From Oculina patagonica (taxonomy: Eukaryota), in assembly GCF_052425735.1 (NCBI RefSeq), contig NC_135770.1:21647813-21702000 (forward strand): 54,188 bases of DNA, written 5' to 3'. Both the position numbers and the translations under genes were made by a program. Under the pieces are notes generated by a model that saw only the letters and a program-made list of their open reading frames with translations, did no database searches and had not been told where the DNA came from. Shown piece after piece: positions 21,843-45,800 of this stretch (within the stretch, counting starts at the first letter, position 1; the number at the start of each line of letters is the position of its first letter).

Positions 21843-24800
21843 TTATTCTGAAGAGCAGGTCTCCTGATGTACTGTTGGCGACACAGCTAAAGTGAAAAGT
21901 TTTTGTAGCTTATCCTTATGAACTGGGTGAAATGGTTGACCATCCACTGACATTTCTCTCTTCTGGGAAATTCCATCGCACACTCCAAGCCGAACAATAC
22001 ATTTAAGTATTTCTTCCTCCTGGAAAAAAACAAGCCATTTTAAATTACATTTTATAGTTGCAGAATTTCAGACCAAAAGTAAATGCTTTAACACAAAAAA
22101 TTTAAAACCTGGGACAAACGAGGATGAGAGTTGATGAGTGTTCAAATTCTCGCTCTCGTTTGGCTTTGAAGCTCTCATGCACTCTCATTGACTTTGAACG
22201 TGCTCAAAGTTTTCATGAAAGTCGATGAGAGTTTTCTCTCGTTTGGCCCGAGTTGTTCAAAGTCGATGAGAGTTGGTGAAAACTCTCATGAGAGTCAACT
22301 CTCATCGTTGTTTTGCCCGGGTTTTACACTCAATAATTTCTTACTTACTTTTCGCGGAATTCTAGATTAGAATCACGAAACAAGTGTGAACGGTAACGCA
22401 GTGTCGTGTTGTGTTAGTGAACCGCTTCAACACGAACGGCAAGCAGTGAGAGAGTTGCTTTTTACAGTTTATTACTGAGAGAATAAACGGATGAAGGGCC
22501 AAGCCCGAAACGTTTGATATTTTTGTAGTGATCTTGGCACTACTGTTTAACATTAAATAATAAATAATTTACACAACCAAGTACAACGCAACCTATGAAC
22601 TGTTTACCTTCGATTACAAGTAATTAAGATCATTACCGTTTTCACTGTATTTAGGACGTCCTCTTTAGAAATAACTCTGACTGTCCCAACTCCTCGTCTA
22701 GCATACCGCGAGTGCACTGGACACTGATTTAAGATGTACAGTGCTGCCACCAAAGCCGATGCACCCCAGTTAGACACGCCCGCGGTGATCAAATGGTCAG
22801 TGGTAACCGCACTGGCTATTTGTTGTCCGTTTTCAATGTGATCAATGACCTGTGTGTGGACTTTTCCCATCCCGATCTCATTTCCACCATCACCGATTCC
22901 TACAGTGGAAATCTTTTCTGACTTATAGGCTGAAAATAAAAAAAATCATATTTAAGAAGGGGTCATCATTGAGGGAGTTCGAAGTAAAAACTATTGCTGA
23001 ATTGGCGGCCGACTTTAAACGTCTGGTTCACAAGAAAGATTCTCAATTGACTATCAAATTAAAGGGACATGGTCAGCGTTCTTACCGCGCTGACCTGGAC
23101 ACTAGTTTTCACGTTTTGAAAAAAAAGTCCACGGTGGACTTTTTTCAAAAAGAACCTTCAGAAATCTGCTTCAATCTTCTCAGTGATTCACTAAATAGGA
23201 AAATTTAGAAAAAAAACACTGAGAAGATTGAAGCAGATTTCTGAAGGTTCTCTACGCGTATTTTTGATTTCGGGTTAAGGTGGACTTTTTTCAAAACGTG
23301 AAAACTAGTGTCCAGGTCAGCGCGGTCTGAACGCTGACCATGTCCCTTTAAAATTCGCGTTTCCTTTGGTTTTGTGCTTGGCTAGCTCTTATAACTGATT
23401 TTACAATGTGTAACTTATTATAACGACTCTGAGCAAACCCAAAATCAATTTTGACTGGCTTACACACGTTGTCTCGCGCTTGAAAAAAAAAAAATGATGC
23501 GAGTAACAACTGAGTCATTGCGTTACTTGAGTACGTCCTTTAACTTTCAAACCAATCTCGTTCGTTCTCGTTCGTTTCGTCACTGATCAGTAGAAACAGA
23601 TGTTCTGGGAACGAGATTGGTATTACACGTGAAGATATGAACACGAGCACTAGGTTTGAAATGTCGTACACGTAATTCGATTGCTAAAGGGATCTTGGAA
23701 GGGCCCTAAAAGCCTGATGGTCCCGTCTACAAGGTCACCGCACCTCCTTAACAAAGTACGAGCTTATTATTACCTTGAATGAAAACTTCATCAACTGGAC
23801 TGACTTTACAAACATCGGATAAGTCTCTAGCTTTCATCGTCATGTAACGTCCCTCTTCTGTCCTGCTAATCGCTTCTATGGCAACCAAAGCGTCAAACTT
23901 GGGGCTCATTTGATGCGCTGCATCGTGGAACAGGAGTTTCTCAGCAGCTGCCCTAACTCCACCTGAGCCATGCGTTCTTTCGGGTGTGAACTCCACAACA
24001 GACACGTCGTTCTCCAAAAAAGTTTTTACAAGCTCCTGCACTAATTTCAGGTGGTAGTAACTTGCAATAAACGTCACCTCCTTTCCAAGAGCTTTGAGGG
24101 CTTTGCCCATTGCGATCGCCCCTAAAGGACCATCAGTTTCATCCGGAAACTCCTCCTTGGTGTTACAAGGGAAGCCGAAATGTATGGCCACAGACGAAGC
24201 GTGAGACAACACAAGCGCGGCCTTCAGGAGCTCATCAGGTATGTGAAGCTTCGCGACACCCCTTTTCCCGATGTCTTCCTGAATCTCGGTCTCCAGGCAA
24301 CGGATTGTGTTAATGACTTTTTCAGACAACAGAGAAGCAGTAAAGGGTTTTTCCTTTATTGTCACCACCCGTGGCTGTGTATCAGTATCAATGGACGGAT
24401 TACTATCACGAAATTCTTTGACTGTTCTATCGCACTCAACAAGTCGCTCCATGTCGTCAGTAAAGGCCAGTGGTAAACCTGTAGAGAAAAAATAATAGGG
24501 TAGTGTAATATCAGGAGTCCACAACCCACTTATTGACCTGGAAAGATCACAATCTTTACCGGTGAAAACAATCTCTTCTCGTCGGTTATTGGCCTTTTGC
24601 GACCAAGAAAGGTGCACATCCCCACCTAAAGTAACTAAAAGTGTATGAAATTTAGAGAATAGAATTTGGTGAGTGCATATTTCGTCTAGAAATGTTTCCA
24701 CTACAGATGATGACGTACTATACATTATGACGAGGGAATTTAGTCGTGGTGTCGAAACAGCCGCAATCTTAACTTGGAATCCGCCATCACAAACTTCTTG

Positions 24801-27800
24801 CCTTTTTTATGCAGACAAAAAAACATCGAAACTGGCTCGAAAGTAATAAAGTGTAATAAAAAGATACTAAAACGCTAAAAATGTATACAAGGTTACAAAC
24901 AATAGACGGAATCGGCTAATGTGTTAATGTATCCTTGTTTCCACCCAATTCATACGTACCACGTGATGGTTTTTTTAGGGAGGTTACAACTGTACAATTT
25001 CTTACACGAAGCTGAGTGTATGGGAATATGTACGAACAGAACAATTGTAATCTCCCAAATGAATCATCACATGATCTGTATTAACCTTAGCCGAATCTGT
25101 CTATGATGCCACCTTTGTAAACAGAAGCAACAGGCGAATGTTTTTCTTGGGAAACAGTTAAAAATATTGGAGGAGGGTTTTTTAAAACTTTCCGAGCCAA
25201 CGATCATTCTATAAAACACAGAGTCCGAATCTAATGATTGTTTTGTTATAAATTGTCACAAAGAAAAACGCGTTCAAAAACTTCGAATTCTGAGAAAAAC
25301 AAAATGACGCAATTGATGAAAATATTACATGAAAGATTATCTTGTCATGGATGTCAGTCATTCGAAGTGCTGATTATTGATTTGTGCTTACACATAAAAT
25401 TAGCATATGTGTTCAAACGCACTAAAATTAAAATTAACCTTTTCAATGATGTCATTTATAAATTTCAACGATTAAACAATAGAGGCTATTTCTGATCTAG
25501 TTCTGTCAGTATTTCAATACTGCTAATAAAAACTAGATTTATATTTAGTTCTTCTTTTCATTCGTCAAGAGTTTCATGAAAGTAAAACGAAAATTATTGC
25601 AGCCGTTCTTATCTTATTGACCCGCTTTAGAACGAAGAGAAAAGGGACTTTCCCTTTCGCAAATATTTTCAACCTTTATTTACTTTCTTAGAATCATGAA
25701 TATTTCATTTTTTCTAGACAAGCAAATGTTGTGATCGCGTGGCCTGATGTCGCCGTTTCGGTTTCACCGACGAAAATCGATTCTCTGTCTGTCTCTTAGC
25801 TTCGACTTAACTCTGTAGATTTTAAAAACGGAGCCTGAAACTTTGGCATGGGTTCAAAAGAATCACCTCATTCTTGTGGCACGAAGAAAGCCGCCGACAG
25901 AAGGAGGTCGAATTTTTTCTGGTATGCGATTGACTCACTTATTGCACATGGCCATCTTGTTTTATCAGCAAATGCTAAAAATATCCGATATCCTCCGAGG
26001 AAAATCTCGCTAATATGACATATACTAAAACCCGAAACAACGAAACGAAACCACCGAAAGGTCTGCAGTCTGCCTGCACACCGGTTAGCTTGAATATAAA
26101 CGCTTAGGTTTACGATGAGCTCTCGATTATGGTAATGAGTTTCGCTTGTCTCGGCCGTTTCGGTCGTTTTGGCGCGGATTTTGTTTTGGTGGCTTCGCTC
26201 GTTTCGGTGGTTCCGTTTCGTTGTTTCGGGTTATACTTTTAATACATGGCATGTAGTTCATGTCCACAAATATGAACTGTTGCAGGAACGAACGGCAAGA
26301 AACCGGAACGTACCATGCAGACAACTCAGAGAACTGAGCCGAGTCAGAATAAAACTGAGCCAAATCGGCAACCATGCAAAGAGACAACTATAAGTTGCTA
26401 TAAACGAGGAATTATTTTTATATGTACACAATGAATGACCTTCCGTCACAGTCCAGAGAGCCAGAATTATCGAACGAAACGGTTGAAGTTCTTCCATTAG
26501 AACCAAAAGCTGAAGGGCGGGAGCTTTGCAGCGATGTGAATACATTATTTACGTTTTCTCTCGACGAGTCAACCTCAGTAGTTGCGGAGGCGAAAATCGA
26601 CACAGAATCTAACACGTTGAACATCCTTCTCACGAACTGCAACCTCGTGACAGTCGGACGGTCAGACACCCAACAACTCAAATGTAATTGTCATTTACAA
26701 GAGGAGAACAAATGTGTTAGCAACAGTGACAATGAGGTTCGGTCAGACAGTGCATCGAAGACTGCAGATTCTGCAAATCGCAGCCTTGGAGGGCGTAAGC
26801 CAACAGAATACCAATTGCAGCATTTTAATGAAGCAGCAGAAGACTGCAAACCGGTTGACTCGGATGAGATAGTGGGGAGCGTCGAGCCATTGTTGCCTTT
26901 GATCAAAAAGCAAGGATATCTTAACGGATCACAATGTGAGAGAATCATGGAACAACTTGAGATTTTACAGGACAATGGAAAATTTGGAGAGCATGAGGGT
27001 CTTGTCACATCATATCTCTGTCGTTGTGGGGAAGAAAAGAATTCTGACTTGGAATTGGCATTAAGAATTGAGCGCGGAGTGGCATTTTCTTATCACAAAG
27101 AGTTCAAAAACAGCAAGCGTATGTTCACCTCAGTCATAAAATCAGACAAAGAGCTTAGAAATCCGAATATTTTAATTGCAAGAGCGTACTTTTTACTTGT
27201 CGCTGACTATAGAAGTAAAAAGGTCATAAAACTCTCCCCGCTCTTTGAATTTCTTAGACGCAGCGAGTTTTTACTTCAAAACCACGACTCGCCAGAGGAC
27301 TGGGCCGAATTGTATTACAACTACGGCTCTGTATGGTTGGTTTACATGAGCATGATCCCGGATGATGAGAGGAATGCGCAAGCGCGAAACACTGCTCGGG
27401 GGAATGCAAGATACTACTATGAGCAGGCGATTTCTTTCTGCAAGAAAGATCCACGATTGAGAGTTCAAATAAAGAAGCAAACATACATTCATCTTAAACT
27501 GGCTGCACTACTACTCGACTGCAGTTCGAAAGCCGCCCGAACTCGTCAAAAAGTCATTCCACCAACTGACATCAAGGAGGCTAAAGAACATCTGGATTTC
27601 GTACAGTACAAACTTGGCGTTTGTTTACCGCTAGGTACTCGTGTGCAGCTTTTAAAAACTCGTTCGGATCAATTTTATCGTCAGGAAATATTTCAGCTAG
27701 CCAAAGAAACAGCCGAAGATGCGTTACAGATCGCTTTGTCCAACGAATTTTACACCGAAATAGACACTCTACGGGAAAGAATTGACTTTCTTGACAAATT

Positions 27801-30800
27801 GTGTGAGGAAGGAATCAAAGTGATTGCTATAAAAGAAATCTCAAGTTCCAGCAGTGAAATATGTTGTAGCGAATCTGCAGAATCTGAGTAGGAGATTAAA
27901 AAGATAAATCAGAATTTAATTAGTGGATAAGATTTATTTAAATTTTGCGAGAAATAAATCACCCACAAGAAATACTTCAAGAAATTCTCGGGAGTATTTC
28001 CAAAGAATTCCTGTGAAATTCGGCACACACTTTCACGTTATAATAAAAAGACAACAACTTAGTTGCTCTCCCTCTCCTCTCTCCCTTTCTCTACATTTCT
28101 CTTTTCCCTCTTTATGGTCTGGATTTTTTTGGCAAATTTTGGAAATAATCTGTATTCCAATTTGGTAAAAAAAAAAAAACCCTCAAGATAAAGACATTAA
28201 ACAAAAGATGTGATCAAGAAGACAGGCGGCGTGGCCAAGTGTTTTAGCTTGATAGCGCTGAATTTAAAATCAGTCTCCATCTTGCCATTATCTGAATATT
28301 TCCCTCTGTAGTAACTGATATACTAAAGCTCACATTTTATTCGATGGTTTTACTGATTATACGCGTGGATAGTTAACGAGTTTCGTCGTATTTTTCCGAG
28401 CCCGCAGTGGCAAGGAAAAATGCTCCAAAATGAAGCACGACAGTGTAATACGGAATAGTTATTTAGCAGAGGGCATGTACTAAGTCACGCCATTCAGAAC
28501 GTTCTTGGGCTAATCCAGCAATCTTTTGCCAATCCGACAGAATTTGGCGCTGTTCCCACCATCGGTCGAATAATAATGTTAGTATGTATAAAGCAAAAAT
28601 AAGCCGACATAAATTTTCATTTATACGTTTAATTCAATTCCTGCAGATGTATCGTTATATCTAAGCTTAGAAGATCAACAATATTAAAAAGACATATTTC
28701 AGCATAGCTATAATTCTATGAATTATTAAAACGGAAGTGGTTTCAATAGTGAAACTGATGTATCTGTCACACTGGCGCACCCTTGGAAAAGGGACTTTCC
28801 CTTACAAAACTTTCGAAACTTTTTTTCACTTATGAGATTAATTTACATAATAAAAATATAAAACATGAATATATTATTTTCTCTGCGTGCACATTTTCTC
28901 AACGTTTTTCTCGACGTTTTGCATCTACAAGAAGGCAGCTTGACAAGCAGCTAGAAGAAGATATTCGAAACACGCGTTTTAATAGTAGTCGTGAAGAAAT
29001 TTTAGTCGACAAATGCATGCAAAACAATTTGGCCTCAATTCAAAACAATAACACGAATGCTTAAAATAGAATATGAATGGCATCAAAGAGGCACTAGTCT
29101 TCGCACGATCACAAACAGCGATGGCGGACCTTGCCAGACAGAACGTACTACACGTCCACAAATATGATCTGTTGCAGGAATAAACGGCAAGAAACAGGAA
29201 CGGATCTTACGGACAACTGAACAACCAAACAAACAACCACAAGTTGTTAAAAACAAGGTGTTATCTTCATGTGTACACAATGACAAACCTTCCCCCACAG
29301 TCCGGAGAGCAATATTCATCGAACGAAACGGTTGAAGTTCTTCCAAGAGAGCCTATAAAAGCTGAAGGGCAAGAGTCTCGCAGCCATGTGAACACATTAT
29401 TTACGTTTCTTCTCGACGGTCCAGCCTCAGTTACTGCTGAAGCAAAACTCGACACAGAATCTAACACGCTGAACATCCTTGTCACGAACTGCAATCTCGT
29501 CACAGTTGGACAGTCAAATCCTCAACAACTCAAATATAATTGTTGTTTACAAGAGGAACACAAATGTGTTAGCAACATTGACAATGAGGTTCGGTCAGAC
29601 AGTGCTCCGAAGACTGCAGATTCCGCAGATCGCAGCCTTGGGGGACGTTTAAATCAAGCAGCACAAGACTGCAAACCGGTTGACTCGGATGAGATAGTGG
29701 TGAGCGTCGAGCCATTGTTGCCTTTGATCAAAAAGCAAGGATATCTTAACGGATTACAATGTGAGAGAATCATGGAACAACTTGAGATTTTACAGGACAA
29801 TGGAAAGTTTGCAGAGCATGAAGGTCTTGTCAAGTCATATCTCCATCGTTGTGGGGAAGAAAAGAATTCTGACTTAGAAATGGCATTAAAAATAGAGCGC
29901 GGAGTGGCATTTTCTTATCACAAAGAGTTCAAAAACAGCAAGCGTATGTTCACCTCGGTCATAAAATCAGACAAAGAGCTCAGAAATCCGAATATTTTGG
30001 TTGCAAGAGCGTACTTTTTACTTGTGGCTGACTATAGAAATAAGAAGGTCGTTAAACTCTCTCCGCTCTTTGAATTTCTTAGACGGAGCGAGTTTTTCCT
30101 TCAAAACCACGAGTCGCCAGAGGACTGGGCCGAGTTGTATTACAACTATGGCTCTGTTTGGCGGGTTTACATGAGCATGATCCCGGATGATGAAAGGAAT
30201 GCGCAAGCGCGAAACACTGCCAGAGGAAATGCAAGATACTATTATGAGCAGGCAATTTCTTTCTGCAAGAAAGATCCACGATTGAGAGTTCAGATAAAGA
30301 AACAAACATACATTCATCTTAAACTGGCTGCACTACTACTCGACTGCAGTTCGACAGCCGCCCGAACTCGTCAAAAACTTATTACACCTGTTGACATCAA
30401 AGAGGCAAAAGATCATCTGGATTTTGTACAGTACAAACTTGGCGTTTGTTTGCCGTTAGGCACACGTGTGCAGCTTTTAAAAACTCGCTCGGATCAATTT
30501 TATCGTCAGCAAATATACCAGCTAGCCAAAGAAACAGCCGAAGAAGCGTTACAGATCGCTTTGTCCAACGAATTTTACACCGACATAGACCCCCTACGGG
30601 AAAGAATTGACTTTCTTGACAAACTGTGTGAGGAAAGAATCAGAGTGATTGCTATAAAAGAAATCTCAAGTTCCAGCAGTGAAATATGTTGCAGCGAATC
30701 TGCAGAATCCGAGTAGGAGATCAAAAAAAATAAATCAGAATTTAATTAGTGGATAAGATTTCTTTAAATTTTGCAAGAAATAAATCACCCAGAAGAAATA

Positions 30801-33800
30801 CTTCAAGGAATTCTCGGGAAGTCAAATGAATTATCGAGAATTCTCGTGAAAATTTTCAAAGAATTCCTGTGAAATTCGGCACACACTTTCACGTTATAAT
30901 AAAGAGACAACAACTTAGTTGCCCTCCCTGTCTTCCTTTCCTTTTTGCCCCGTCTCCCTTAAGTACCCTTTCTCTACATTTCTCTTTCCCCTCTTTACGG
31001 TCCGGATTTTTTGGTAAATTTTGAAAATAATGCGTATCCCAATTTGATAAAAAAAATCCCTTAAGATAGCGACATTAAACAAAAGATGTGATCCAAGTAG
31101 AGAGGCGGCGTGGCCTAGTGTTTCAGCTTGATGGCACTGAATATAAACTCTGTGGGTCCCTTGTTCATAGTCTCCATGCTGCCATTATCTGAATATTTCC
31201 CTCCTCAGTAACTGAAATACTTACAGCTTATTCGATGGTTTAACAGATAATACGCTTGGATATTTTACGAGATGAGAAATATTTTTCCGAGCCCGCAGGG
31301 GCAAGGGAAAATGCTCCAAAATGGGGCACTACAGTGTATTAATACGGAATGCTGTCTTAGCCACGTAGATCCTTGAAGAAGCAGAGGGCATGCACAAAGT
31401 CACGCCATTCAGTGATCTCGGGCTGATCTAGCAATCCTTTGCCATCCAACCGAATTTGGCGCAGTTCCCACCATCAGTCAAATAATAATGTTACAAGTAT
31501 GTGTAAAGCGAAACTAATAAGCCGGCATAAAGTTTCATTTATGTTTAATTCAATTCCTGCAGCTGTGTCGTTCAGCTTCTCTTAAATAAAAGGCAAAGAT
31601 CAAACCCAATAAAAAGACATATTTCAGTATAACTTTTATTCTGTGACTTATTTATCATTCTTCAACAGTTTGAAACAATGCAAACGGAAGTGGCTTGCAG
31701 AAGTGAAACTGATGTATCCGTCGCTCTAGCGCACCCCTGTAGTAGGGACTTCCCCTTACAAAACTTTCAAAACATTTTTCATACAGATATTATTATAAAA
31801 CATGAATATCTTATTTTCGCTGCGTGCAAGGTTTCTCGAATGTTCTCTAGATAGCCATGTTTTGCTTCTACTAGGAAAGAAGCTCTGTGTACAGCGAATA
31901 CCGAAGAAATTCGAAACACACGTTTTAGAAGTCGTGAGAGATTTTTCGGCGACGAAATGTATGCAAAACACTTTGGCTTCAATTCAAAACAATTACAGGG
32001 CGCCAAATAGAACACTGTCCTACTGAATCCATTAAGTTGACACAATGAGGAATAGTTCTGAACAGCGAGGCGAAGCTCCAAGACGAGCGAAACGAAGATT
32101 CATCCGTACGCGGAACTGAAGTATCTTTAAAGCAACCCATGCCTGAAGGGCAACCAGGTGGTTTCAACGGCGTGTTATTCAAGCTTTCTCCAGACGAATC
32201 GAACTCGATAATCGCGGAAGCAAACCTTGACGCACAAACAAAGACGTTGAACATAATTCTCAGGGAATGGAACGCCGTTTTAGTCGGCAACTCAAAAGCC
32301 GGACAAGTTGAGAATAATTGTCATTTGGATAACAAACAAAGTCCACAGCAAAAACTACAAAAACGTTCCTTCGAAGATGACCTTCAGGCTGACAGCGGTA
32401 CAAAAGAACAGTATTGCAGTGAACAACAAAAGACAATAATAAAAGAAGACGAATACCAACTGCAGCCTTTTAATGAGGCAAACACGCTCTGCAAACAGGC
32501 TCCGCCGCTTGAAGTTGTCGTGGATGTCGAGCCACAGTTACCTTTGATCAAAATACAAGGATATCTAAACGGACCACAATGCGAGGAAATCATGGAACAG
32601 CTTCAAGGTCTACAAGACGATGGAGAGTTTGAAAAACATGAATGTTTGGTTACTTCGTACCTAGACACTTTTGCTTTCAAAAACAATACTGACATGGCAT
32701 TAGCCTTGAAAATTGAGCTCGGAGTCGCTTGTTCATACCACAAAGATTTCAAACACAGCAAACGCCTTTTTACATCAGTAATAAACTATGATCGCATTTC
32801 TCAGCTAAGAAATGCAAACATTTTACTAGCCAGAGCCTACTATCGACTCGTACAAGACTTTAGATATCGAAAAAATAGGAAACTGTCCTCTCTTTTTCAC
32901 TGCATGGAAAAAAGTGAGTTTTTACTGCAAAACCACGACTCGCCGGAGGACTGGGCCGAGGTGTATTACAACTATGGCTCACTTTGGTTAGCGTATATGA
33001 GCATCATTCCGGATGACGAGAGAAATGCGCAGGCGCGAGACGACGCCAGGAGAAAGGCGAAAAATTACTTCGAAATGTCAATTGAATCCTGTAAAAAAGA
33101 TCCTCGATTGAGAGTGCAGATTAAAAAACAGATATACGGTCACCTTCGAGTCGCTGCGGTGTTACTTGACTGCACCTCAACTGTCGCCCGAATTCGAAGA
33201 AAAGTCATTTCCCAACAAGATATTGAAGATGCGAGAAAACACCTTAATATTTTGGAGCACCAACTTAGCAGCAACATTCCTCGAGGTACACGCGTGCAGA
33301 TTTTAAAAATGCGTTCTGATCAATACTATCGCCAAGGACCAGCAATGTATCAACTGGCCAAAGAAACTGCTCAGGAAGCTTTTAGAATTGCACTATGTCA
33401 TGGATTTAACACTGAACTGGAATCGCTTCAAGAGCGAATTGATTTTCTCGATCAGTTGTGCGAAGAAGCAGTGTGCAAAGAAAGGATAACGGTGCTCGTT
33501 GATAGTGATAGTGAAACTTCTGGTAACGACGCCAGCTGTGAAACAAGCGGCAGTGAAAACTGAAAAAAAAAATGTAAAAAAAGCCAGACCCCAGTTGCTA
33601 AAGAGACTTCAAACTGTCCATAAACATAAACTACAGTTGAACCTCGCTAATTCGAACTCGGTTATTTCGAATTCCCCGTTAATTCGAACTAAAACCCGTT
33701 TCCCTTGGATTTGCCCTTCAGTCATTTACTATCGGCTATTTCGAACTCCCGCTATTTCGAACTATTTCGAACTCCCGCTATTTCGAACTATTTTTTGTTT

Positions 33801-36800
33801 CCCCTGACGGTTCGAAATAGCGGGGTTCAACTGTAATTCTATACTATTACAATTTAATGTAAGCTGGAAAGGGAATAATAAAATTACAATTCCAAGAATC
33901 GAAAGTGTTCTGCAAAAAAAATTTGAATGGTATTCATAATTCGTTAAGGGACTTTCCCTTTTACCAACTGAAGTTATTACAGTTTTATTCTTAATATTTA
34001 ATGCCTCGGATAGCAATATATTCTCCAAGATTTCTCACAACTGGTTTGATTGCGTCTTCGGCGTCGCTTTCGTTTATGCTGTTTTTTTACATGTTCACTA
34101 TGAATTACTTTTGCCAGGCTGAGTTTGTCACTTTTTGATGTGTAGGCGAGTCTCTTTTTACAATTGTTTTACTAGCATAATCGCTTCAGTCTCTTATCCA
34201 GCTTTCCTTGGAAAGTTGCGCCAAACGTGTTTCAAAACAATTTTTGTGTGACGCGGGTGAGGTTGAATTTCGTAATCCAGATCTCTAAATGAAACATCAC
34301 AGGAATTCAACAACTGAGTTCTAAATACATACACTAATGCCCTTGGCTACAACCTTTTTTTTCTTTAATCAGTCAATGAGCTTAAATTATTTTGTAGGTC
34401 TAGAGGCGACCCTTTCCAAATATTGGAAGATCATAAAAAACACAACCACAATTTCTTTTCCCAAGAATCGGGAAACAAGATGCAAAAAGATGCTATAAAT
34501 ATGTTAAAAGCTGATGTTGCAACATAATTTTAAGAAAGGTCTTATTTCATTTTCTTTTTTTATGTATCAGTCAATTCCAAGCGAGATCACCCCCCCCCCC
34601 CCCCCAACCCCCTGGCATTTGACCGCTACTGAAGCCCAGATAGTAAGGAATTTGATCGAACAGAAGCCCGGATGGTCGGGCATTTGACCGAATGACCGAC
34701 ATTGACAATGAGGTTCGGTCAGACAGTGCTCCGAAGACTGCAGATTCCGCAGATCGCAGCCTTGGGGGACGTTTAAATCAAGCAGCACAAGACTGCAAAC
34801 CGGTTGACTCGGATGAGATAGTGGTGAGCGTCGAGCCATTGTTGCCTTTGATCAAAAAGCAAGGATATCTTAACGGATTACAATGTGAGAGAATCATGGA
34901 ACAACTTGAGATTTTACAGGACAATGGAAAGTTTGCAGAGCATGAAGGTCTTGTCAGGTCATATCTCCATCGTTGTGGGGAAGAAAAGAATTTTGACTTA
35001 GAAATGGCATTAAAAATAGAGCGCGGAGTGGCATTTTCTTATCACAAAGAGTTCAAAAACAGCAAGCGTATGTTCACCTCGGTCATAAAATCAGACAAAG
35101 AGCTCAGAAATCCGAATATTTTGGTTGCAAGAGCGTACTTTTTACTTGTGGCTGACTATAGAAATAAGAAGGTCGTTAAACTCTCTCCGCTCTTTGAATT
35201 TCTTAGACGGAGCGAGTTTTTCCTTCAAAACCACGAGTCGCCAGAGGACTGGGCCGAGTTGTATTACAACTATGGCTCTGTTTGGCGGGTTTACATGAGC
35301 GTGATCCCGGATGATGAAAGGAATGCGCAAGCGCGAAACACTGCCAGGGGAAATGCAAGATACTATTATGAGCAGGCAATTTCTTTCTGCAAGAAAGATC
35401 CACGATTGAGAGTTCAGATAAAGAAACAAACATACATTCATCTTAAACTGGCTGCACTACTACTCGACTGCAGTTCGACAGCCGCCCGAACTCGTCAAAA
35501 ACTTATTACACCTGTTGACATCAAGGAGGCTAAAGAACATCTGGATTTCGTACAGTACAAACTTGGCGTTTGTTTGCCGTTAGGCACACGTGTGCAGCTT
35601 TTAAAAACTCGCTCGGATCAATTTTATCGTCAGCAAATATACCAACTAGCCAAAGAAACAGCCGAAGAAGCGTTACAGATTGCTTTGTCCAACGAATTTT
35701 ACACCGACATAGACCCCCTACGGGAAAGAATTGATTTTCTTGACAAACTGTGTGAGAAAAGAATCAAAGTGATTGCTATAAAAGAAATCTCAAGTTCCAG
35801 CAGTGAAATATGTTGCAGCGAATCTGCAGAATCCGAGTAGGAGATCAAAAAAGATAAATCAGAATTTAATTAGTGGATAAGATTTATTTAAATTTTGCAA
35901 GAAATAAATCACCCAGAAGAAATACTTCAAGGAATTCTCGGGAAGTCAAATGAATTATCGAGAATTCTCGTGAAAATTTTCAAAGAATTCCTGTGAAATT
36001 CGGCACACACTTTCACGTTATAATAAAGAGACAACAACTTAGTTGCCCTCCCTGTCTTCCTTTCCTTTTTGCCCCGTCTCCCTTAAGTACCCTTTCTCTA
36101 CATTTCTCTTTCCCCTCTTTACGGTCCGGATTTTTTGGTAAATTTTGAAAATAATGCGTATCCCAATTTGATAAAAAAAATCCCTTAAGATAGCGACATT
36201 AAACAAAAGATGTGATCCAAGTAGAGAGGCGGCGTGGCCTAGTGTTTCAGCTTGATGGCACTGAATATAAACTCTGTGGGTCCCTTGTTCATAGTCTCCA
36301 TGCTGCCATTATCTGAATATTTCCCTCCTCAGTAACTGAAATACTTACAGCTTATTCGATGGTTTAACAGATAATACGCTTGGATATTTTACGAGATGAG
36401 AAATATTTTTCCGAGCCCGCAGGGGCAAGGGAAAATGCTCCAAAATGGGGCACTACAGTGTATTAATACGGAATGCTGTCTTAGCCACGTAGATCCTTGA
36501 AGAAGCAGAGGGCATGCACAAAGTCACGCCATTCAGTGATCTCGGGCTGATCTAGCAATCCTTTGCCATCCAACCGAATTTGGCGCAGTTCCCACCATCA
36601 GTCAAATAATAATGTTACAAGTATGTGTAAAGCGAAACTAATAAGCCGGCATAAAGTTTCATTTATGTTTAATTCAATTCCTGCAGCTGTGTCGTTCAGC
36701 TTCTCTTAAATAAAAGGCAAAGATCAACAACAATAAAAAGACATATTTCAGTATAACTTTTATTCTGTGACTTATTTATCATTCTTCAACAGTTTGAAAC

Positions 36801-39800
36801 AATGCAAACGGAAGTGGCTTGCAGAAGTGAAACTGATGTATCCGTCGCTCTAGCGCACCCCTGTAGTAGGGACTTCCCCTTACAAAACTTTCAAAACATT
36901 TTTCATACAGATATTATTATAAAACATGAATATCTTATTTTCGCTGCGTGCAAGGTTTCTCGAATGTTCTCTAGATAGCCATGTTTTGCTTCTACTAGGA
37001 AAGAAGCTCTGTGTACAGCGAATACCGAAGAAATTCGAAACACACGTTTTAGAAGTCGTGAGAGATTTTTCGGCGACGAAATGTATGCAAAACACTTTGG
37101 CTTCAATTCAAAACAATTACACGGGCGCCTAAAATAGAACACTGTCCTACTGAATCCAGTAAGTTGACATCAATGAGGCATTATAGTTCGCATGAACAGC
37201 GATGGCGAAGCTTCCAAGACCGAGCGAAACGAAGATTTCATCCGTACGCGGAACTGAAGTATCTTTAAAGCAACCCATGCCTGAAGGGCAACCATGTGGT
37301 TTCAACGGCGTGTTATTCAAGCTTTCTCCAGACGAATCGAACTCGATAATCGCGGAAGCAAACCTTGACGCACAAACAAAGACGTTGAACATAATTCTCA
37401 GGGAATGGAACGCCGTTTTAGTCGGCAACTCAAAAGCCGAACAAGTTAAGAATAATTGTCATTTGGATAACAAACAAAGTCCACAGCAAAAACTACAAAA
37501 ACGTTCCTTCGAAGATGACCTTCAGGCTGACAGCGGTCCAAAAGAACAGTATTGCATTGAACAACAAAAGACAATAATAAAAGAAGACGAATACCAACTG
37601 CAGCCTTTAAATGAGGCAAACACGCTCTGCAAACAGGCTCCGCCGAGTGAAGTTGTCGTGGATGTCGAGCCACAGTTACCTTTGATCAAAATACAAGGAT
37701 ATCTTAACGGACCGGAATGCGAGCACATCATGGAACAACTTCAAAGTCTACTAGACGATGGAGAGTTTGAAAAACATGAATGTTTGGTTACTTCGTACCT
37801 AAACACTTTTGTTTTCAAAAACAATACTGACATGGCATTAGCCTTGAAAATTGAGCGCGGAGTCGCTTGTTCATACCACAAAGATTTCAAACACAGCAAA
37901 CGCCTTTTTACATCAGTAATAAACTATGATAGCATTTCTCAGCTAAGAAATGCAAACATATTACTAGCCAGAGCCTACTATCGACTCGTACAAGACTTTA
38001 GATATCGAAAAAATAGGAAACTGTCCGCTCTTTTTCACTGCATGGAAAAAAGTGAGTTTTTACTGCAAAACCACGACTCGCCGGAGGACTGGGCCGAGGT
38101 GTATTACAACTATGGCTCACTTTGGTTAGCGTATATGAGCATCATCCCGGATGATGAAAGAAATGCGCAGGCGCGAGACGACGCCAGGAGAAAGGCGAGA
38201 TATTACTTCGAAATGACAATTGAATCCTGCAAGAAAGATCCCCGATTGAGAGTGCAGATAAAATTACAGACTTTTGGTCACCTACGAGTGGCCGCTGTGT
38301 TACTTGACTGCACCTCAACTGTCGCCCGAATTCGAAGAAAACTGATTCCCCAACAAGATATTGAAGATGCGAGAAGGCATCTAGATATTTTGGAGCACCA
38401 TCTAAGCAGCAACATTCCTCGAGGTACACGCGTACAGATTTTGAAAGCGCGTTCTGATCAATACTATCGCCAAGGACCAGGCATGTATCAACTGGCCAAA
38501 GAAACTGCTCAGGAAGCTTTGAGAATTGCACGTTGCCGTGGATTTAACACTGAACTGGAATCGCTTCAAGAGCGAATCGATTTTCTCGATCAGTTGTGCG
38601 AAGAAGCAGTGTGCAAAGAAAGAATTACATTGCTTGTTGATAGTGAAACTTCTGGTAACGACGCCAGCTGCGAAACAAGCGGCAGTGAAACTGAAAAGAA
38701 ATAAAAATGCCACACTCCAGGGTTTTTTTTATACCATCAATGAAAGTAACAGTTTGCTAAAGAGACTTCAAAGTGTCCAAAAACATTCAATAATTCTATA
38801 CTATTACCATTTAATGTTAGCTGGAAAGGACAATAATTTAATCACAATTCATAATTAATTTAGGGACTTTCCCTGTAACCCAAGTCAGTCACGGCTGGCT
38901 GAAAATATTCAAACAAATAAAGTTTTTGAATATGATTCATAATTAATTCAGGGCTTTCTCTTTTACCCAAGTCAGTCACCGCTGGCTATTTTGTTGAACC
39001 TTTTTTGAAATATTCAAACAAATAAAGTTTTTGAATATGATTCATAATTAATTCAGGGCTTTCTCTTTTACCCAAGTCAGTCACCGCTGGCTATTTTGTT
39101 GAACCTTTTTTGAAATATTCAAACAAATAAAGTTTTTGAATATGATTCATAATTAATTCAGGGACTTTCTCTTTTACCCAAGTCAGTCACGGCTGGCTAT
39201 TTTGTTGATCCTTTATTCATTTATTCAAGAAAATGTCAAAACATAATATCATACTTCCCACCCCTTGCCTCCAGCTTTCCCTGCCCCCCACCCCCCTATC
39301 ACCCCACCCTACCGAACACACTCCCCTAATTTCCAATTACTACTAGTTCTATGACTTATTTATTCCGAAAGTGGTTTTAAGTGGTGAAACTGATGTATCT
39401 GTCACACTGGCGCACACTTGGAAAAGGGACTTTCCCTTACAAAACTTTCGAAACCTTTTTTCACTTATGAGATTAATTTGCATTATACAGATATAAAACA
39501 TGAATATATTATTTTCTCTGCATGCACATTTTCTCAATTAAGTTTTCTCTGGATAGCGACGTTTTGCTTCTACTAAAAAAGCAGTTCTGCGTACGGCGAA
39601 AAAGAAATTGGATTAAGAAATTAAACCCACGTTTTAGAAGTCGTGAAGGATTTTTCGTCGACAAATGTATGCAAAACACTTTGGCTTCAATTCAAAACAA
39701 TTACACGGACACTTAAAATAGAATACTGTACGATCGAATTGAGTTAGTTGACATCAAAGAGGCATAAGTCTTCGCACGAACAGCGATGGAAAACCTCCCA

Positions 39801-42800
39801 AGACAGAGCGAAACGAAGATTTCATACGACCGCGAAACTGAAGCACCTTTAAACCAATCCCAGCCCGAAGGACAACAAACTTGCAGTGGTCTCGTATTCA
39901 AGTTTTCTCCAGACGATTCAGCGTCGATAATCGCTGAGGCAAACCTTGACGCACAAACAAGTACGTTGAACATAATTTTCAAGAAGTGGAACACCGTATT
40001 AGTTGGCAACTCAAACGCTGGACAAGTTGACTGTAATTGTCATTTTGACAACAAGCAGAGTCCACAGCAAAAACGTTCCTTCGACAAAGAAATTCAGTCA
40101 GACAGCGGTCCAAAGGAAGAGTATTGTGAACAACAGAAGACAATAACAAAAGACGAAGAATACCAACTGCAGCCTTTTTTGAATGAGGCAAACAGGCTCT
40201 GTAAAGAGGCTCCACCAGATGAAATTGTTGTTGATGTCGAGCCACAGTTACCTTTAATCAAAATACAAGGATATCTCAACGGATCGCATTGCGAGCAAAT
40301 CGCTGAACAACTTGAAGGTCTACAAGACGATGGACAGTTTGATAAACATGATCGTTTGGTTACTTCGTACTTGAACCATTCATCGTGCAAAGACATGGAA
40401 TTAAGCTTAAAAATTGAGCGCGGCGTGGCCTTTTCTTACCAGAAAAAATTCAAACAGAGCAAACGCGTTTTTACATCAGTAAAAAACTTTGATACCATCT
40501 CTCAGGTAAGAAATGCAAACATTTTACTAGCCAGAGCCTACTATCGACTCGTACAAGACTTTAGATATCGAAAAAATAAGAAACTATCCGCTCTTTTTTA
40601 CTGCATGGAAAAAAGTGAGTTTTTACTGCAAAACCACGACTCGCCGGAGGACTGGGCCGAAGTGTATTACAACTATGGCTCACTTTGGTTAGCGTATATG
40701 AGCATCATTCCGGATGACGAGAGAAATGCGCAGGCGCGAGACGACGCCAGGAGAAAGGCGAGATATTACTTCGAAATGTCAATTGAATCCTGTAAAAAAG
40801 ATCCTCGATTGAGAGTGCAGATTAAAAAACAGATATACGGTCACCTTCGAGTCGCTGCAGTGTTACTTGACTGCACCTCAACTGTCGCCCGAATTCGAAG
40901 AAAAGTCATTCCTCAGCAAGATATTGAAGATGCGAGAAAACACCTTAATATTTTGGAGCACCGACTTAGCAGCAACATTCCTCGAGGTACACACGTACAG
41001 ATTTTGAAAACGCGTTCTGACCAATACTATCGCCAAGGACCAGGCATGTATCAACTGGCCAAAGAAACTGCTCAGGAAGCTTTGAGAATTGCACGTTGCC
41101 ATGGATTTAACACTGAACTGGAATCGCTTCAAGAGCGAATCGATTTTCTTGATCAGTTGTGCGAAGAAGCAGTGTGCAAAGAAAGGATAACGGTGCTCGT
41201 TGATGGTGATGCTGAAACTTCTGGTAACGACGCCAGCTGTGAAACAAGCGGCAGTGAAAACTGAAAAAAAAAATGTAAAAAAAGCCAGACCCCAGTTGCT
41301 AAAGAGACTTCAAACTGTCCATAAACATAAACTAATTCTATACTATTACAATTTAATGTTAGCTGGAAAGGGAATAATAAAATTACAATTCCAAGAATCG
41401 AAAGTGTTCTGCAAAAAAAAATATGAATGGTATTCATAATTCATTAAGGGACTATCCCTTTTACCAAATAATAATAATAATAATAATTACGAATTTGTTG
41501 TGCGCAAATTCCATACGTAAATGTTCAAATGCGCATTACAAAAAAACAAAAAGTTAAAATTACAGCTTAAAAATTAAAATTCTTAAAAACTAAGTTATAG
41601 GTTGAAAATTACAACTGAAGTTATTACACCCCTCAGTAACAGATCCAGTGGAATCTTAATCCTCGCCGGGTTTGTTAGGGGAAAAAATCACTGGGTTGGC
41701 CAAATTTCCACTGGGTCGGCTTATTTTCGACTAGGTTTTTGTAATAGGTTTATTCCATGAGGGACTCCTGGTTTATTCGCGTACGATAAAAACATGGGCA
41801 ATTGTGGAGAATGCGGGGTTTTCTATTACTTTTTTCCGCCCGCAAAGAGGCTGCTTTATAGTGACTAAACTGAAGTGAGAAAAGAAGAGTGTTGCAAGCA
41901 GTAGCGTAGCGAGGATTTTTTCAGAGGTACGCACAGTTTTTAAAATCATCCTCTACTGCACCCCGCCCCCTTCAAATCTGGACGCTATTGCTTTGCAGTA
42001 TTTTCTTTATCATCAGCCTAATGACACCATGTTGTATACTGAAGGCCTGTAGGAACGAATTTGAACCGAGGGCCCCAAAGTTTGCATTGTGATGAGATAT
42101 TATGGGCCGAAAGGCTTGTCGATGTCCGGGGGGGGGGGGCATCATCCCCTGGGAATATTTAAAAATTTTGATACGTTCTATAAATGCCATTCGTCGCATT
42201 GAGCAACCCCTATCGAAGTGCTTTTTCTTGACAATTTCGCTCCCGAATGGCTTTCCGTTCCGGAACTAGAACTGCTGGTAGAACTTTCTATAGCTTTCGA
42301 CTTTTGTAGAAACTGTTGTTTTTTTGTTGGTTTATTCGTTTTCAAAAATACGCTGGGGTTTTCAATTCACACTGCACAGTCACTGCACAGTCGCTGGGTA
42401 CTGGGGAGGCTAAATTTTCACTGGGAAGGGGAAAAATCCACTGAGTCGGGTTCCGCTGGGTCTGTTACAAAGGGGTGTTTTATTCTTATTATTTAATGAC
42501 TCGGATAGCAATATATTCTCCAAGATTTCTCACAAGTGGTTTGATTGCGTCTTCGGCGTCGCTTTCGTTTATGCTGTTTTTTTACATGTTCACTATGAAT
42601 TACTTTCACCAGCCTGAGTTTGTCACTTTTTGATGTGTAGGCGAGTCTCTTTTTACAATTGTTTTATTAGCATAATCGCTTCAGTCTCTTATCCAGCTTT
42701 CCTTGGAAAGTTGCGCCAAACGTGTTTCAAAACAATTTTTGTGTGACGCGGGTGAGGCTGAATTTCTGAATCCAGATCTCTAAATGAAACATCACAGGAA

Positions 42801-45800
42801 TTCAACAACTGAGTTCTAAATACATACACTAATGCCCTTGGCTACAACCTGATTTGACTTGTAATCAGTCAATGAGCTTAAATTATTTGTAGGTCTAGAG
42901 GCGACCCTTTCCAAATATTGGAAGATAATAAAAACACAACCACAATTTCTTTTCCCAAGAATCGGTAAAAAAAAAAGATGCAAAAAGATGCTATAAATAT
43001 GTTAAAAGCTGATGTTGCAACATAATTAAGTTAAGAAAGGTCTTATTTCATTTTCTTTTTTTATGTATCAGTCAATTCCAAGCGAGATCATCCCCCCCGG
43101 CCAACCCCCGGGCATTTGATCGCTACTGAAGCCCAGATAGTGGGGAATTTGATCGAACAGAAGCCCGGATGGTTGGACATTTGACCGAATAACCGTTGTC
43201 ACAAAATGTGTTATTAACTATTTAAAGCGCTAGCGAGCTCAAGCGCGTGAAGTTAGTATTTGGTTACGTTAATGTAAAGTACCTAGTTTCAACGTACCGT
43301 ATTTTCTCGATTAAACGCCCACGGCGTTTATTTCAAACTTGGCCCGATAGGGCCGGCGTTTATTTGAATTCAGGAGTTTTTTCAAGCCCTATGTTTCTAA
43401 GAAACGATTTTTATTCATTATTTTTGGCAGCTTTATAATTAGACATTGTTTTAAAATCATATTAAACCTTTAAAAATTGTTTAAGGGGTTTATTTTCAAA
43501 TACAACTTGGAGACCCGGCGTTTATTCGGGGCCCGGCGTTTAATCGAGAAAATACGGTATCTATCTTTTCCTATTAAAATTGGCTGATAAATAGGGCAGG
43601 AGTGTCCGTTTAGACCAAGTGTTAACGATAAGGTAACTGGTTGTTAGCGAATCCGCTCGTACTCGTAGGCAAAACGACTGCAATTCAACGAGAAAACCGA
43701 CTCACAATGACATTTCAGCCCCGACTGGTGGGGCATTTGACCATGCAACTGGCCCACATAGTGGGGAATTTGAACAGACATTTTGAAAAAAGACAAATGC
43801 CCGGGGGTTTGCCCGGGGGGGGGGGATGATCTCGCTTGGAATTGACTGACACATTTTACGTAAGGTTTCAATGGTCTGACCTCTTTCAATAAGGTATGAA
43901 ATTACTTGGGACCCAGCGCGGTTTAGTAATGAACTTTTTCAGCAATCAACATTTTACTTCCAATCTACAACAGTTTCAAAAAAGAAAAGCGGAGTTTATG
44001 GTAGAATTAGAAAAATAATGCCGATAACTCTTTCATACACTGAAGCGGAAAAGCGGCGTTTTACCTTTCAGAGCTTTCGAAACCTTTGTTTACTTGTTTG
44101 TTTTTTGTAGCTCGACTTACATGCAAATATCAATCATAAATATTTCAATCAGTTCTCTGCGTGCAAGTTTTCATGTAAGAAGCTCTGGCTTGAATTCAAA
44201 ACATTCCTCGGGGTATTAAAGTATGTTAACAAGTATCCGATGTCCTCGGAGATGATCTGGCAACACAGGCGCCTGAACTAGAACAAAACTGAACCGAATC
44301 GCGAACCAAAGATAGCCTGTGTACAGCCGTCCCACACAGGCTAACCAAAGGCAACTGAGCTGACAACAAAGACTGGTACTGTATCTTCATACATGAACCT
44401 TCAACGCAGACCGGAATGGAGGTTTCATCCGACCGCGGAACAGAGGTAACTTTAGAGCAACCCAAAACTGAAGGACAGCAATCTTCCAGCGATCTCAACA
44501 CCGCGTTATTTACGTTTCCTCTCAACGATTCTTCCTCGATAATTGCCGAAGCAAACCTCGACGCACAAACAAAGACGTTGAACGTGACTCTAAGAAACTG
44601 GAACGCAGTTTTAGTCGGCCACTCAAACAATGAACTTGACTGTATTCCTCATTTGCATCTAGACCATAAGCAAAATGCACCGCACAAATGTTTCAACGAA
44701 ACCCTTCAGGCTGACAGCGGTCCAAAGAAAGAGTTTTGCAATGAACAACAAAAGACAATAATAAAAGATGAACAAGAATACCAACTGCAGCCTTTTAGTG
44801 GGGCAAATAGACTCTACAAACAGGCTCTGTCGGGAGAAATTGTTGTTGATGTTGAGCCACAGTTACCTTTGATCAAAATACAAGGATATCTCAACGGATC
44901 GCAATGCGAGGAAATCATGGAACAACTTGAACGTTTACAAGACGATGGACAGTTTGAAAAACATGATCATCTGGTTGCTTCGTACCTAAACCGTTTTGCG
45001 TGCAGAAACAATACTGATATGGCATTAGCCTTGAAAATTGAGCGCGGAGTGGCTTTCTCTTACCAAAAAGAACACAAACAAAGCAAGCGACTTTTGACCT
45101 CAGTAATAAAATCTGACACAATTTCTAAGCTTAGAAATCCAAACATTTTATTGGCAAGAGCCTACTGTCGACTCGTTCAAGACTACAGATATAGAAAAAG
45201 TACGAAACTATCCGCTCTTTTTCATTGGGTGAGAAAAAGCGAGTTATTATTGCAAAACCATGAATCGCCTGCGGATTGGTCTGAAGTGTATTACAACTAT
45301 GGCTCACTTTGGTTAGCGTATATGAGAAAGATCCCAGATGACGAGAGAAATTCGCAGGCGCGAGACGATGCTCTAAGAAAGGCGAGATATTACTTCGAAA
45401 TGACAATCGAATCAGGCAAGAAAGATCCCCGATTGAGAGTGCAAATTAATAAACAGATATATGGTCACCTACGAGTCGCTGCTGTGTTACTTGACTGCAC
45501 CTCAACTGTCGCCCGAATTCGAAGAAAAGTCCTTCCCCAACAAGATATTGAAGACGCGAGAAAACACCTGGATATTTTGGAGCACCAACTTAGCAGCAAC
45601 ATTCCTCGAGGTACACGCGTACAGATTTTGAAAGCGCGTTCTGATCAATACTATCGCCAAGGACCAGGCATGTATCAACTGGCCAAAGAAACTGCTCAGG
45701 AAGCTTTGAGAATTGCACGATGTTATGGATTTAACACTGAACTTGATTCGCTTCAAGAGCGAATCGATTTTCTCGATTAGTTGTGTGAAGAAGAAGTGTG

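Follow-up and report, generated by a model that had tools for sequence, protein, structure and literature searches.

The stretch of DNA analyzed here, referred to in the following as the window, comprises 54,188 nucleotides of the coral Oculina patagonica (contig NC_135770.1, positions 21,647,813 to 21,702,000 of the forward strand) and contains an array of paralogous genes with a short motif near the start of their open reading frames (ORFs). The original prediction had described this motif as a cryptic RIP homotypic interaction motif (RHIM), with VTVG or VLVG in place of VQVG, conserved in an otherwise fast-diverging N-terminus. The window is eukaryotic DNA of ~40% GC with sparse ORFs. Between 26.4 and 50.5 kb, eight paralogs follow one another head to tail on the + strand, each consisting of little more than a single long ORF; their nearest named homologs are found in the stony corals Desmophyllum, Orbicella and Pocillopora. 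The copy 1 protein has a 100%-identical entry in the public collection and ~140 coral homologs. The genes, the motif as matched with a profile of the array motif (A3), and the parts of the copy 1 protein, which ends in a domain resembling tetratricopeptide repeats (TPR), are located as follows; the core positions of copies 2, 3 and 5 to 8 are from pattern and profile scans.

25727–25920, + strand: 5′ non-coding exon of copy 1, spliced to 26285 (assembled contigs)
26422–27891, + strand: copy 1 coding ORF, 489 aa, with N-tail, β motif, disordered linker, TPR-like domain and acidic Ser-rich tail (ORF list)
26542–26673, + strand: N-terminal β motif block of copy 1, residues 41–84 (A3 match, E 1.6e-19; entropy and nonsynonymous divergence, dN, below those of the flanks)
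26614–26658, + strand: RHIM-like core of copy 1, TLNILLTNCNLVTVG, inside 26608–26670 (hhalign onto the superfamily profile)
26674–26913, + strand: disordered linker of copy 1, residues 85–164 (predicted local distance difference test, pLDDT, 27–44; high entropy, many gaps)
26914–27846, + strand: TPR-like α-solenoid of copy 1, residues 165–475, 14 helices (pLDDT >90)
29244–30716, + strand: copy 2 ORF, motif at 29394–29522, core at 29466–29510
32139–33563, + strand: copy 3 ORF, motif at 32175–32297, core at 32244–32288
34692–35840, + strand: copy 4, a 5′-truncated duplicate of copy 2 without the motif (blastn)
37202–38704, + strand: copy 5 ORF, motif at 37313–37438, core at 37382–37426
39786–41264, + strand: copy 6 ORF, motif at 39897–40019, core at 39963–40007
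44416–45780, + strand: copy 7 ORF, motif at 44503–44631, core at 44575–44619
49109–50524, + strand: copy 8, motif at 49109–49201 (TLTLTLKGCYAVVVGKS, profile E 2.8e-9), core at 49142–49186, TPR part in ORFs 49415–50026 and 50060–50524

Contigs assembled from three separate runs (X1, X2 and X3) contained a GT..AG joint from 25920 to 26285, skipping 364 nt and leading into the copy 1 ORF, which shows that copy 1 is transcribed from the upstream non-coding exon and spliced. The array consists of real, expressed paralogs with a common layout, in which the motif is followed by an 85-residue disordered tether and a TPR solenoid. Two copies depart from this layout. In copy 4, positions 34699–35840 match 29575–30716 of copy 2 with 98.9% identity by blastn, with no homology upstream; the duplicated part starts downstream of the motif, and copy 4 therefore lacks it. 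This copy is a very recent duplicate in which the TPR ORF is intact and the N-tail and motif are missing, and it is either a young pseudogene or a form that naturally lacks the motif. Copy 8 has kept the motif, and its helical part is broken by in-frame stops (one TAG and one TAA inside the match). The first helical repeats of copy 8 appear to be duplicated (two LPLIKKQGYL-type and EQHLNEEHG... segments), as in the ~550-aa homologs of other corals.

Bases 26608–26670 on the + strand translate to SNTLNILLTNCNLVTVGRSDT, within the 489-aa ORF of copy 1, where the whole block follows the pattern F-x-F ... S-x-I-AEA-x-x-D ... TLN-φ-x-L-x-NCN-x-V-x-VG-x-S (φ, hydrophobic residue). A six-frame pattern scan and a profile search agreed on exactly seven motif copies in the window: seven of the eight paralogs carry S-x-(I/V)-AEA-x-x-D ... 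T-L-N-φ-x-L-x-N-C/W-N-x-V-x-V-G-x-S, and each core is preceded by (I/V/T)AEAxxD. The seven strings first noticed, in copies 1, 2, 3, 5, 6, 7 and 8, were thereby confirmed. A profile search of the 529-Mb genome revealed no further convincing copy, the sole extra row being at chance level (E 2.15, 17.8 bits). Outside this genome, almost every full-length coral homolog shows the block F-x-F ... D-S-x-S-x-I-A-E-A-x-x-D-T-x-x-K-T-L-N-φ-x-L-x-N-C/W-N-x-V-x-V-G-Q-S, even at identities as low as ~40%.

In an alignment of 71 homologs, the mean column entropy was 1.88 bits for residues 41–81, 2.3 bits for both flanks and 1.11 bits for the TPR domain. Among the six intact window copies, dN was 0.26 in the motif, 0.47–0.50 in the flanks and 0.15 in the TPR domain, and the ratio of nonsynonymous to synonymous divergence (dN/dS) was 0.41 in the motif and 0.54 in the flanks. 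The conservation of the block is thus real but moderate: it changes about half as fast as its surroundings, so that the description of a conserved motif in a fast-diverging N-terminus holds, with a more modest contrast than the wording suggests. The best-kept columns are T65, L66, N67, N72, V76, V78, G79 and S81, and hydrophobic positions take turns with variable ones, the pattern of two β strands connected through an N-C/W-N turn. G79 does not vary among the six window copies that were aligned, a Gly is also found in copy 8, and the residue is present in 80% of the 71 homologs. In place of the usual G-x-x-N-x-φ extension there is a conserved Ser at G+2 and a Gln at G+6. We also considered whether residues 42–64 and 65–87 form two HET-s-like pseudo-repeats, and rejected this since hhalign of the two halves gave a probability of 0.15%.

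A motif this short, with a dN/dS only a little under that of its flanks, might resemble a RHIM by chance. It would then be a short β-prone, Gly-terminated strand pair, similar to a hexapeptide repeat, and merely the least-diverged part of a drifting N-terminus, with no role in assembly. Its retention across stony-coral homologs down to ~40% identity speaks against this explanation, as do the profile comparisons described below.

The structure of copy 1 was modeled with AlphaFold2, using the 71-sequence alignment. Residues 1–38 were predicted to be disordered, and both flanks of the motif (residues 1–38 and 80–164) had pLDDT values below 50, with ~30 over residues 80–164. Strands at approximately residues 40–46, 52–60 and 65–71 formed a three-stranded antiparallel sheet with a pLDDT of 76–81 in the full-length model. 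Residues 72–80, which include V-T-V-G, had a pLDDT of 64, and the VTVG tetrad lay just outside the assigned strands. The suggestion that the AEA..D segment might instead make the motif a small β-hairpin is therefore borne out in part: the AEA..D and TLNILL strands do belong to the predicted sheet, and VTVG does not. A complex prediction with four copies of residues 36–92 scored 0.20, under the mark of 0.32, and thus speaks neither for nor against assembly.

The predicted sheet raises the possibility that the motif folds autonomously into a mini-domain, in which the NCN-VxVG segment packs on a three-stranded antiparallel meander, and binds other proteins one-to-one; its ancestry could still be RHIM-like, with the amyloid property lost. 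In the model, the strands at 41–46, 52–60 and 65–71 reach a pLDDT of 87–89 when the N-terminal fragment is predicted alone. The upstream F-x-F and S-x-IAEA-x-x-D strands, specific to the array's family, are conserved along with the core, and the loss of the Gln and partial loss of the Gly are as expected under a relaxed amyloid constraint. However, the N-terminal model matched no known fold (Foldseek E≥2.8; VIA Z≤3.7), its best values, E 2.8 and Z 3.7, giving no structural relative for the mini-domain. A single-layer sheet of 32 residues with one hydrophobic face is also unlikely to be stable by itself, AlphaFold2 can draw β-arch covariation as hairpins, and the profile-level link to RHIM-like motifs in paralogs would still stand. 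We consider this explanation rather unlikely.

The α-solenoid of residues 165–475 matched the TPR domains of LGN/Pins, KLC1, Rap and consensus TPR proteins in Foldseek (probability 1.0, E from 2.7e-4), with a TM-score by target of up to 0.65 and 10–15% sequence identity. The window copies matched no Pfam family at threshold, TPR models included, and Pfam gave no NTPase domain; sub-threshold matches to TPR_12, TPR_2 and TPR_MalT were found in paralogs. In the AlphaFold database, the solenoid matched uncharacterized proteins of corals, anemones, a hydrozoan, an annelid and bivalves, and a protein-atlas feature search returned generic TPR clusters only. The best match for the whole model was residues 396–875 of a scallop protein named caspase-2 (A0A210Q8E0), whose C-terminal half is the TPR-like domain; the model match hints at a direct fusion of this domain to a death protease in bivalves. 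The C-terminus of every intact copy is an acidic tail rich in Ser, Glu and Cys (SSSSSEICCSESAESE or DSETSGNDASCETSGSEN; 27847–27888 in copy 1), which looks like a cluster of phospho-acceptor sites.

The linker contains a conserved x-x-(Q/R)-x-D-S site, at 26734–26751 in copy 1, with a counterpart in each copy (for example, 32376–32402). The D at residue 109 is present in 39 of 58 ungapped homologs and the S at residue 110 in 46 of 58. By its sequence, this could be a caspase-type protease site separating the motif from the sensor.

TPR domains of the LGN, KLC1 and Rap type bind extended peptides in their groove. The motif might accordingly be an intramolecular ligand that docks in the groove of its own TPR domain and auto-inhibits the protein, until it is released by ligand binding or by cleavage of the linker at x-x-x-D-S. 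The long flexible tether between the motif and a TPR domain of this type, with the conserved D-S site in it, would suit such an arrangement. Against it, the motif pLDDT is higher without the TPR domain than with it (87–89 vs. 76–81), which argues for a predicted fold independent of TPR contacts; since the pLDDT rises once the TPR domain is left out, the predicted sheet does not rest on TPR docking. We regard auto-inhibition as improbable, and it would in any case be compatible with a RHIM-type motif rather than exclusive of it.

The TPR domain has ~27 matches in this genome, with homology to the motif-bearing paralogs at E-values of 1e-41 to 1e-12. About 20 more distant paralogs, identified by TPR-domain match (loci L017–L025, L031–L039 and L043), are located on contigs C9 (14.73–15.10, 17.44 and 25.92–25.94 Mb), C12 (0.80 Mb) and C5 (26.43 Mb). 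They are single ORFs of 430–700 aa, and most of those read start with motifs much nearer to the textbook RHIM. These starts include IYIVVSGHPLVQVGSGGNVL, NAIVLNV.DA.IMQIGR.NV, TVCLQVGDDNRVVF and VNFTNCNFYNSPPVVGDGNTVNNY; some of these paralogs have two or three motif copies, one of them with NVVIGDNSTIIV ... FITAIGDGNVIYV, and a conserved middle region (GYLFRFHEPD...) is common to several of the distant paralogs.

A TPR-domain profile run against 1.84 billion cluster representatives, with a cut at E≤1e-3, defined a superfamily of 669 representatives, of which the named ones, from Stylophora and Nematostella, are anthozoan. N-terminal motifs among the paralogs and the superfamily include VNVYNNSGTVVVGDNNNV, LVQVGSGGNV, IMQIGRRNV, CLQVGDDNRVV, VNFTNCNF..VVGDGNTVNNY and VVIGDN. 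Of the 103 full-length representatives, 21 had the pattern N..φ-x-φ-G-x-x-N-x-φ within their N-terminal 230 aa, where 0.4 were expected from shuffling, and none had it within the C-terminal 230 aa; the strict φ-Q-φ-G was found in 19 of the 103, compared with 3.1 expected. In one subfamily the motif has the form (V/I)-N-(V/I)-Y-N-N-S-G-T-V-V-V-G-D-N-N-x-V, which closely resembles the human RIPK3 sequence VNIYNCSGVQVGDNNYLT, and 55 of the 63 members have it. Within this subfamily the "Q" position alternates between Q and V, as in P0343 (TVQVG) and P0170 (TVVVG), and VTVG and VLVG are thus inside the natural range. When ten superfamily members that are long or lack the motif were scanned with Pfam for death-fold, TIR and caspase domains, only TPR repeats and one weak SNaCT5 match appeared.

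For comparison with known motifs, a 27-column profile of 60 superfamily motifs (A5) was searched against 177,635 distinct PDB sequences. The top three matches were RIPK3 RHIM fibril constructs (7dac, 12kl and 7da4), and the mouse construct 6jpd was also listed. The RIPK3 constructs aligned to A5 on the RIPK3 sequence given above, exactly across the tetrad. RHIM chains make up a tiny fraction of the PDB, and a top rank in the correct register is therefore unlikely to have arisen by chance.

Alignment of A3 to A5 by hhalign gave a probability of 84% and a score of 20.8, which was reached by none of 400 column shuffles. The shuffle nulls were 6.7 ± 1.8 (maximum 13.6) and 6.2 ± 1.7 (maximum 16.2), placing the observed score ~8 standard deviations above them. 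In the aligned register, T-L-N-I-L-L falls on φ-x-φ-N-φ and V-T-V-G-R-S on V-Q-I-G-D-x. The original claim that VTVG and VLVG stand in place of VQVG is supported by this alignment on V-Q-I-G as well as by the Q/V exchange within one subfamily. Moreover, the array motif occupies the same N-terminal place as the RHIM-like motifs of the paralogs, with a disordered tether between it and a homologous TPR domain. Judged by position and profile, the array motif is homologous to those RHIM-like motifs.

These comparisons also bear on chance resemblance. In its favor are the failure of the Pfam RHIM model, the PDB E-values of ~1, and the presence of an LpxA hexapeptide-repeat protein and a D-amino-acid oxidase in the same list. 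Opposed to it are the ~50-fold enrichment of the motif class in superfamily N-termini and its absence from the C-termini, the separation of the hhalign score from the shuffles, and the fact that the only biologically coherent PDB matches are the four chains of the RIPK3 RHIM, in which the tetrad is aligned exactly. We therefore consider a chance likeness very improbable.

Several observations count against a RHIM-type motif in the array. The RHIM core tetrad is (I/V)-Q-(I/V/L/C)-G; the window tetrads are V-T-V-G, V-L-V-G or V-V-V-G, the core Gln being replaced by T, L or V, whereas the paralogs on contig C9 and many members of the superfamily read V-Q-V-G, M-Q-I-G or L-Q-V-G. The Gly is gone in ~20% of homologs, belonging to two sub-branches, with sequences of the VLVSQ, VLVRQ and IVQQ types, and an Asn at G+3 is found only in copies 2, 6 and 7 (three of the seven window copies) and in 32% of homologs. 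The sheet of residues 41–71 is predicted confidently without the TPR domain, with a pLDDT of 87–89 in the N-terminal fragment alone, which suits a folded mini-domain no less than an amyloid-prone segment. The RIPK3 matches in the PDB are individually non-significant (E 0.64–1.4), and a D-amino-acid oxidase scores nearly equally. A search of the PDB with A3 itself found no RHIM. The Pfam RHIM hidden Markov model (PF12721; curated cut-off 20 bits), which the original prediction had offered as a check, was run on whole proteins, on 39–63-aa fragments and on the whole genome; it missed every window copy (E≤10, whole proteins or fragments), the genome scan listed none of these loci, and of the canonical relatives tested only two scored, both below threshold (P0179, 11.7 bits; P0147, 12.9 bits). 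Finally, neither A3 nor A5 found the motif on a second architecture (effector, kinase or death domain) in the 529-Mb genome, although the sensitivity of profiles of 27–44 columns is limited.

The best PDB match of A3 (E 1.4) was to a W-x-x-x-I-x-G-x-P strand of a ubiquitin-conjugating (E2) enzyme, which we judged to be a chance β-hairpin likeness.

Evidence at three levels, namely the match of A5 to RIPK3, the match of A3 to A5, and the shared position on homologous TPR domains, makes a diverged RHIM-type motif considerably the more probable reading. From the sequence comparisons, we conclude with good confidence that the RHIM-like motif class has a diverged relative in the array motif. The description as a cryptic RHIM is accordingly retained in the sense of a diverged RHIM type, which agrees with the position, the in-register alignment to A5 and the RIPK3 matches, and not in the sense of a canonical one, as the core Gln is missing and Pfam RHIM fails; the array motif should not be filed as a member of the Pfam family. 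The core is best explained as part of an N-terminal β motif of ~40 residues, apparently a diverged, Gln-less form of the RHIM-type motif at the head of the superfamily proteins, φ-N-φ-x-N-x-x-G-x-φ-Q/V-φ-G-D-x-N-x-φ. Whether the array motif also works by amyloid-like homotypic assembly we consider evenly balanced. The best explanation overall, which we favor by a slight degree, is that a Gln-less, diverged RHIM-type motif heads these TPR proteins and assembles homotypically in signaling. What is new is a class of RHIM-type motifs on TPR proteins that have no NTPase and, where named, all come from anthozoans; the array motif is a further degenerate derivative of this class.

Other features of the locus were also noted. 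The 5′ untranslated region of copy 1 has an intron (25921–26284, 364 nt) with a CGAAAC-rich simple or dispersed repeat, especially at 25974–26160. Contig depth over this repeat was 20- to 300-fold that of its neighbors in four of four runs, so that it represents a high-copy element. On the − strand, at 23748–24725, a neighboring ORF of 325 aa has a D-glutamate cyclase-like C-terminal domain (PF14336, E 5e-33) and is unrelated to the array.

The array motif shares several properties with the vertebrate RHIM (RIPK1, RIPK3, ZBP1 and TRIF; PF12721). Both are short β motifs between flanks that are disordered, by prediction in the array, and in both a Gly ends the strand, and N-C-x-x-V-x-V-G of the array is in register with N-C-S-G-V-Q-V-G of RIPK3. 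Unlike the vertebrate motif, that of the array has T, L or V for the Gln, keeps the G-x-x-N-x-φ tail only partly, has no score with the Pfam model and includes two extra conserved upstream strands. It also precedes a TPR domain, in proteins that lack kinase, TIR, Z-alpha and death domains. TRIF, too, pairs a TPR-like helical domain with a RHIM. RHIMs in general are short, have disordered flanks and contain a critical Gly (PMC4262963), and RIPK1-type RHIM proteins were reported absent from cnidarians in a 2025 survey (PMC12119088). We found no RIPK-, TRIF- or IMD-type partner.

Divergent invertebrate RHIMs, notably in Branchiostoma, have been described at death-fold positions, in some cases with two or three copies per protein (Kajava et al. 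2014, PMC4262963); the text of that study names no cnidarian RHIM-TPR proteins. The array resembles these motifs and the cryptic RHIMs of Drosophila PGRP-LC, PGRP-LE and IMD in its divergent consensus and in taking the interaction-domain slot of an immune-type repeat-domain architecture, and several anthozoan superfamily members likewise have two or three motif copies per protein. It differs in the lack of a NACHT or death domain, and its variant is more degenerate than those described. Searches of the literature on RHIM with coral, Nematostella or TPR, and on the LOC names of the homologs, yielded no description of RHIM-like-TPR proteins in corals or anemones.

In fungi, PP and HET-s motifs are located N-terminal to NB-ARC or NACHT plus TPR or WD receptors; the PP motifs share with RHIMs a G-φ-Q-φ-G core in which N/Q and G are conserved, and are found on NB-ARC-TPR receptors (PMC7885112). 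The HET-s motif of NWD2 and the PP motif of HELLP and PNT1 (PNT1 being NB-ARC plus TPR) resemble the array in that a short N-terminal amyloid motif, in the array a candidate one, belongs to a protein ending in TPR, and in a core of the G-φ-Q-φ-G type whose N and G are conserved. The second HET-s repeat has a hydrophobic residue in place of the Q. In contrast to the NLR-type amyloid signaling systems (fungal NWD2/HET-S and bacterial BASS), the array proteins have an 85-residue disordered linker and no NACHT or NB-ARC domain, and no neighboring effector gene shares their motif, the carriers found being TPR paralogs of the same family only. Across the genome, the carriers of A3 and A5 were only paralogs of the helical, TPR-type family; the motif profiles met no different type of protein and thus no downstream signaling partner. 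The fold of residues 165–475 is that of TPR peptide-binding scaffolds such as LGN/Pins, kinesin light chain and the bacterial Rap/RRNPP receptors, whereas the known scaffolds have no N-terminal RHIM-like motif and are only 10–15% identical to the array proteins.

Based on the diverged RHIM-type reading, we propose the following mechanism. The TPR solenoid would be the sensor part, binding a ligand or partner, and the N-terminal motif on its flexible 85-residue tether would be the assembly part. Upon activation or clustering, the tethered motifs would stack homotypically into an amyloid-like β arcade of the RHIM/HET-s type and nucleate a higher-order signaling complex, probably one that serves immunity or cell death. 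The degenerate V-T/L-V-G variant, with its two extra upstream strands, may constitute a lineage-specific, private assembly code; alternatively, it may partner with the canonical RHIM-like paralogs and cap or modulate them. A protease might cut the tether at the x-x-(Q/R)-x-D-S site and free the motif from the sensor. More broadly, and only tentatively, anthozoans might run an NLR-free form of amyloid signaling, with hundreds of RHIM-like-TPR proteins as cytosolic sensors, whose N-terminal motifs would polymerize once activated, and lineage-specific tandem arrays in which private Gln-less variants either insulate their own signaling from the canonical paralogs or cap and inhibit these.

Amyloid signaling through RHIMs operates in the vertebrate necroptosis and NF-kB pathways and in the insect IMD pathway, and has relatives in fungi and bacteria. 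If the NLR-free proposal is true, RHIM-type amyloid signaling would exist at the base of animals, independently of RIP kinases. A large, expressed family of RHIM-like-TPR proteins, with anthozoans as its only named sources, would be an early-branching test bed for the age of amyloid-type immune signaling in animals. It would test whether such signaling works without a kinase or NTPase, and how much drift of the core tetrad, from Q to T, L or V, is compatible with assembly. The array and its homologs include natural controls in the motif-less copy 4 and the sub-branches without the Gly. For coral biology, these uncharacterized tandem genes are candidates for a role in immunity, symbiosis control or the regulation of cell death.

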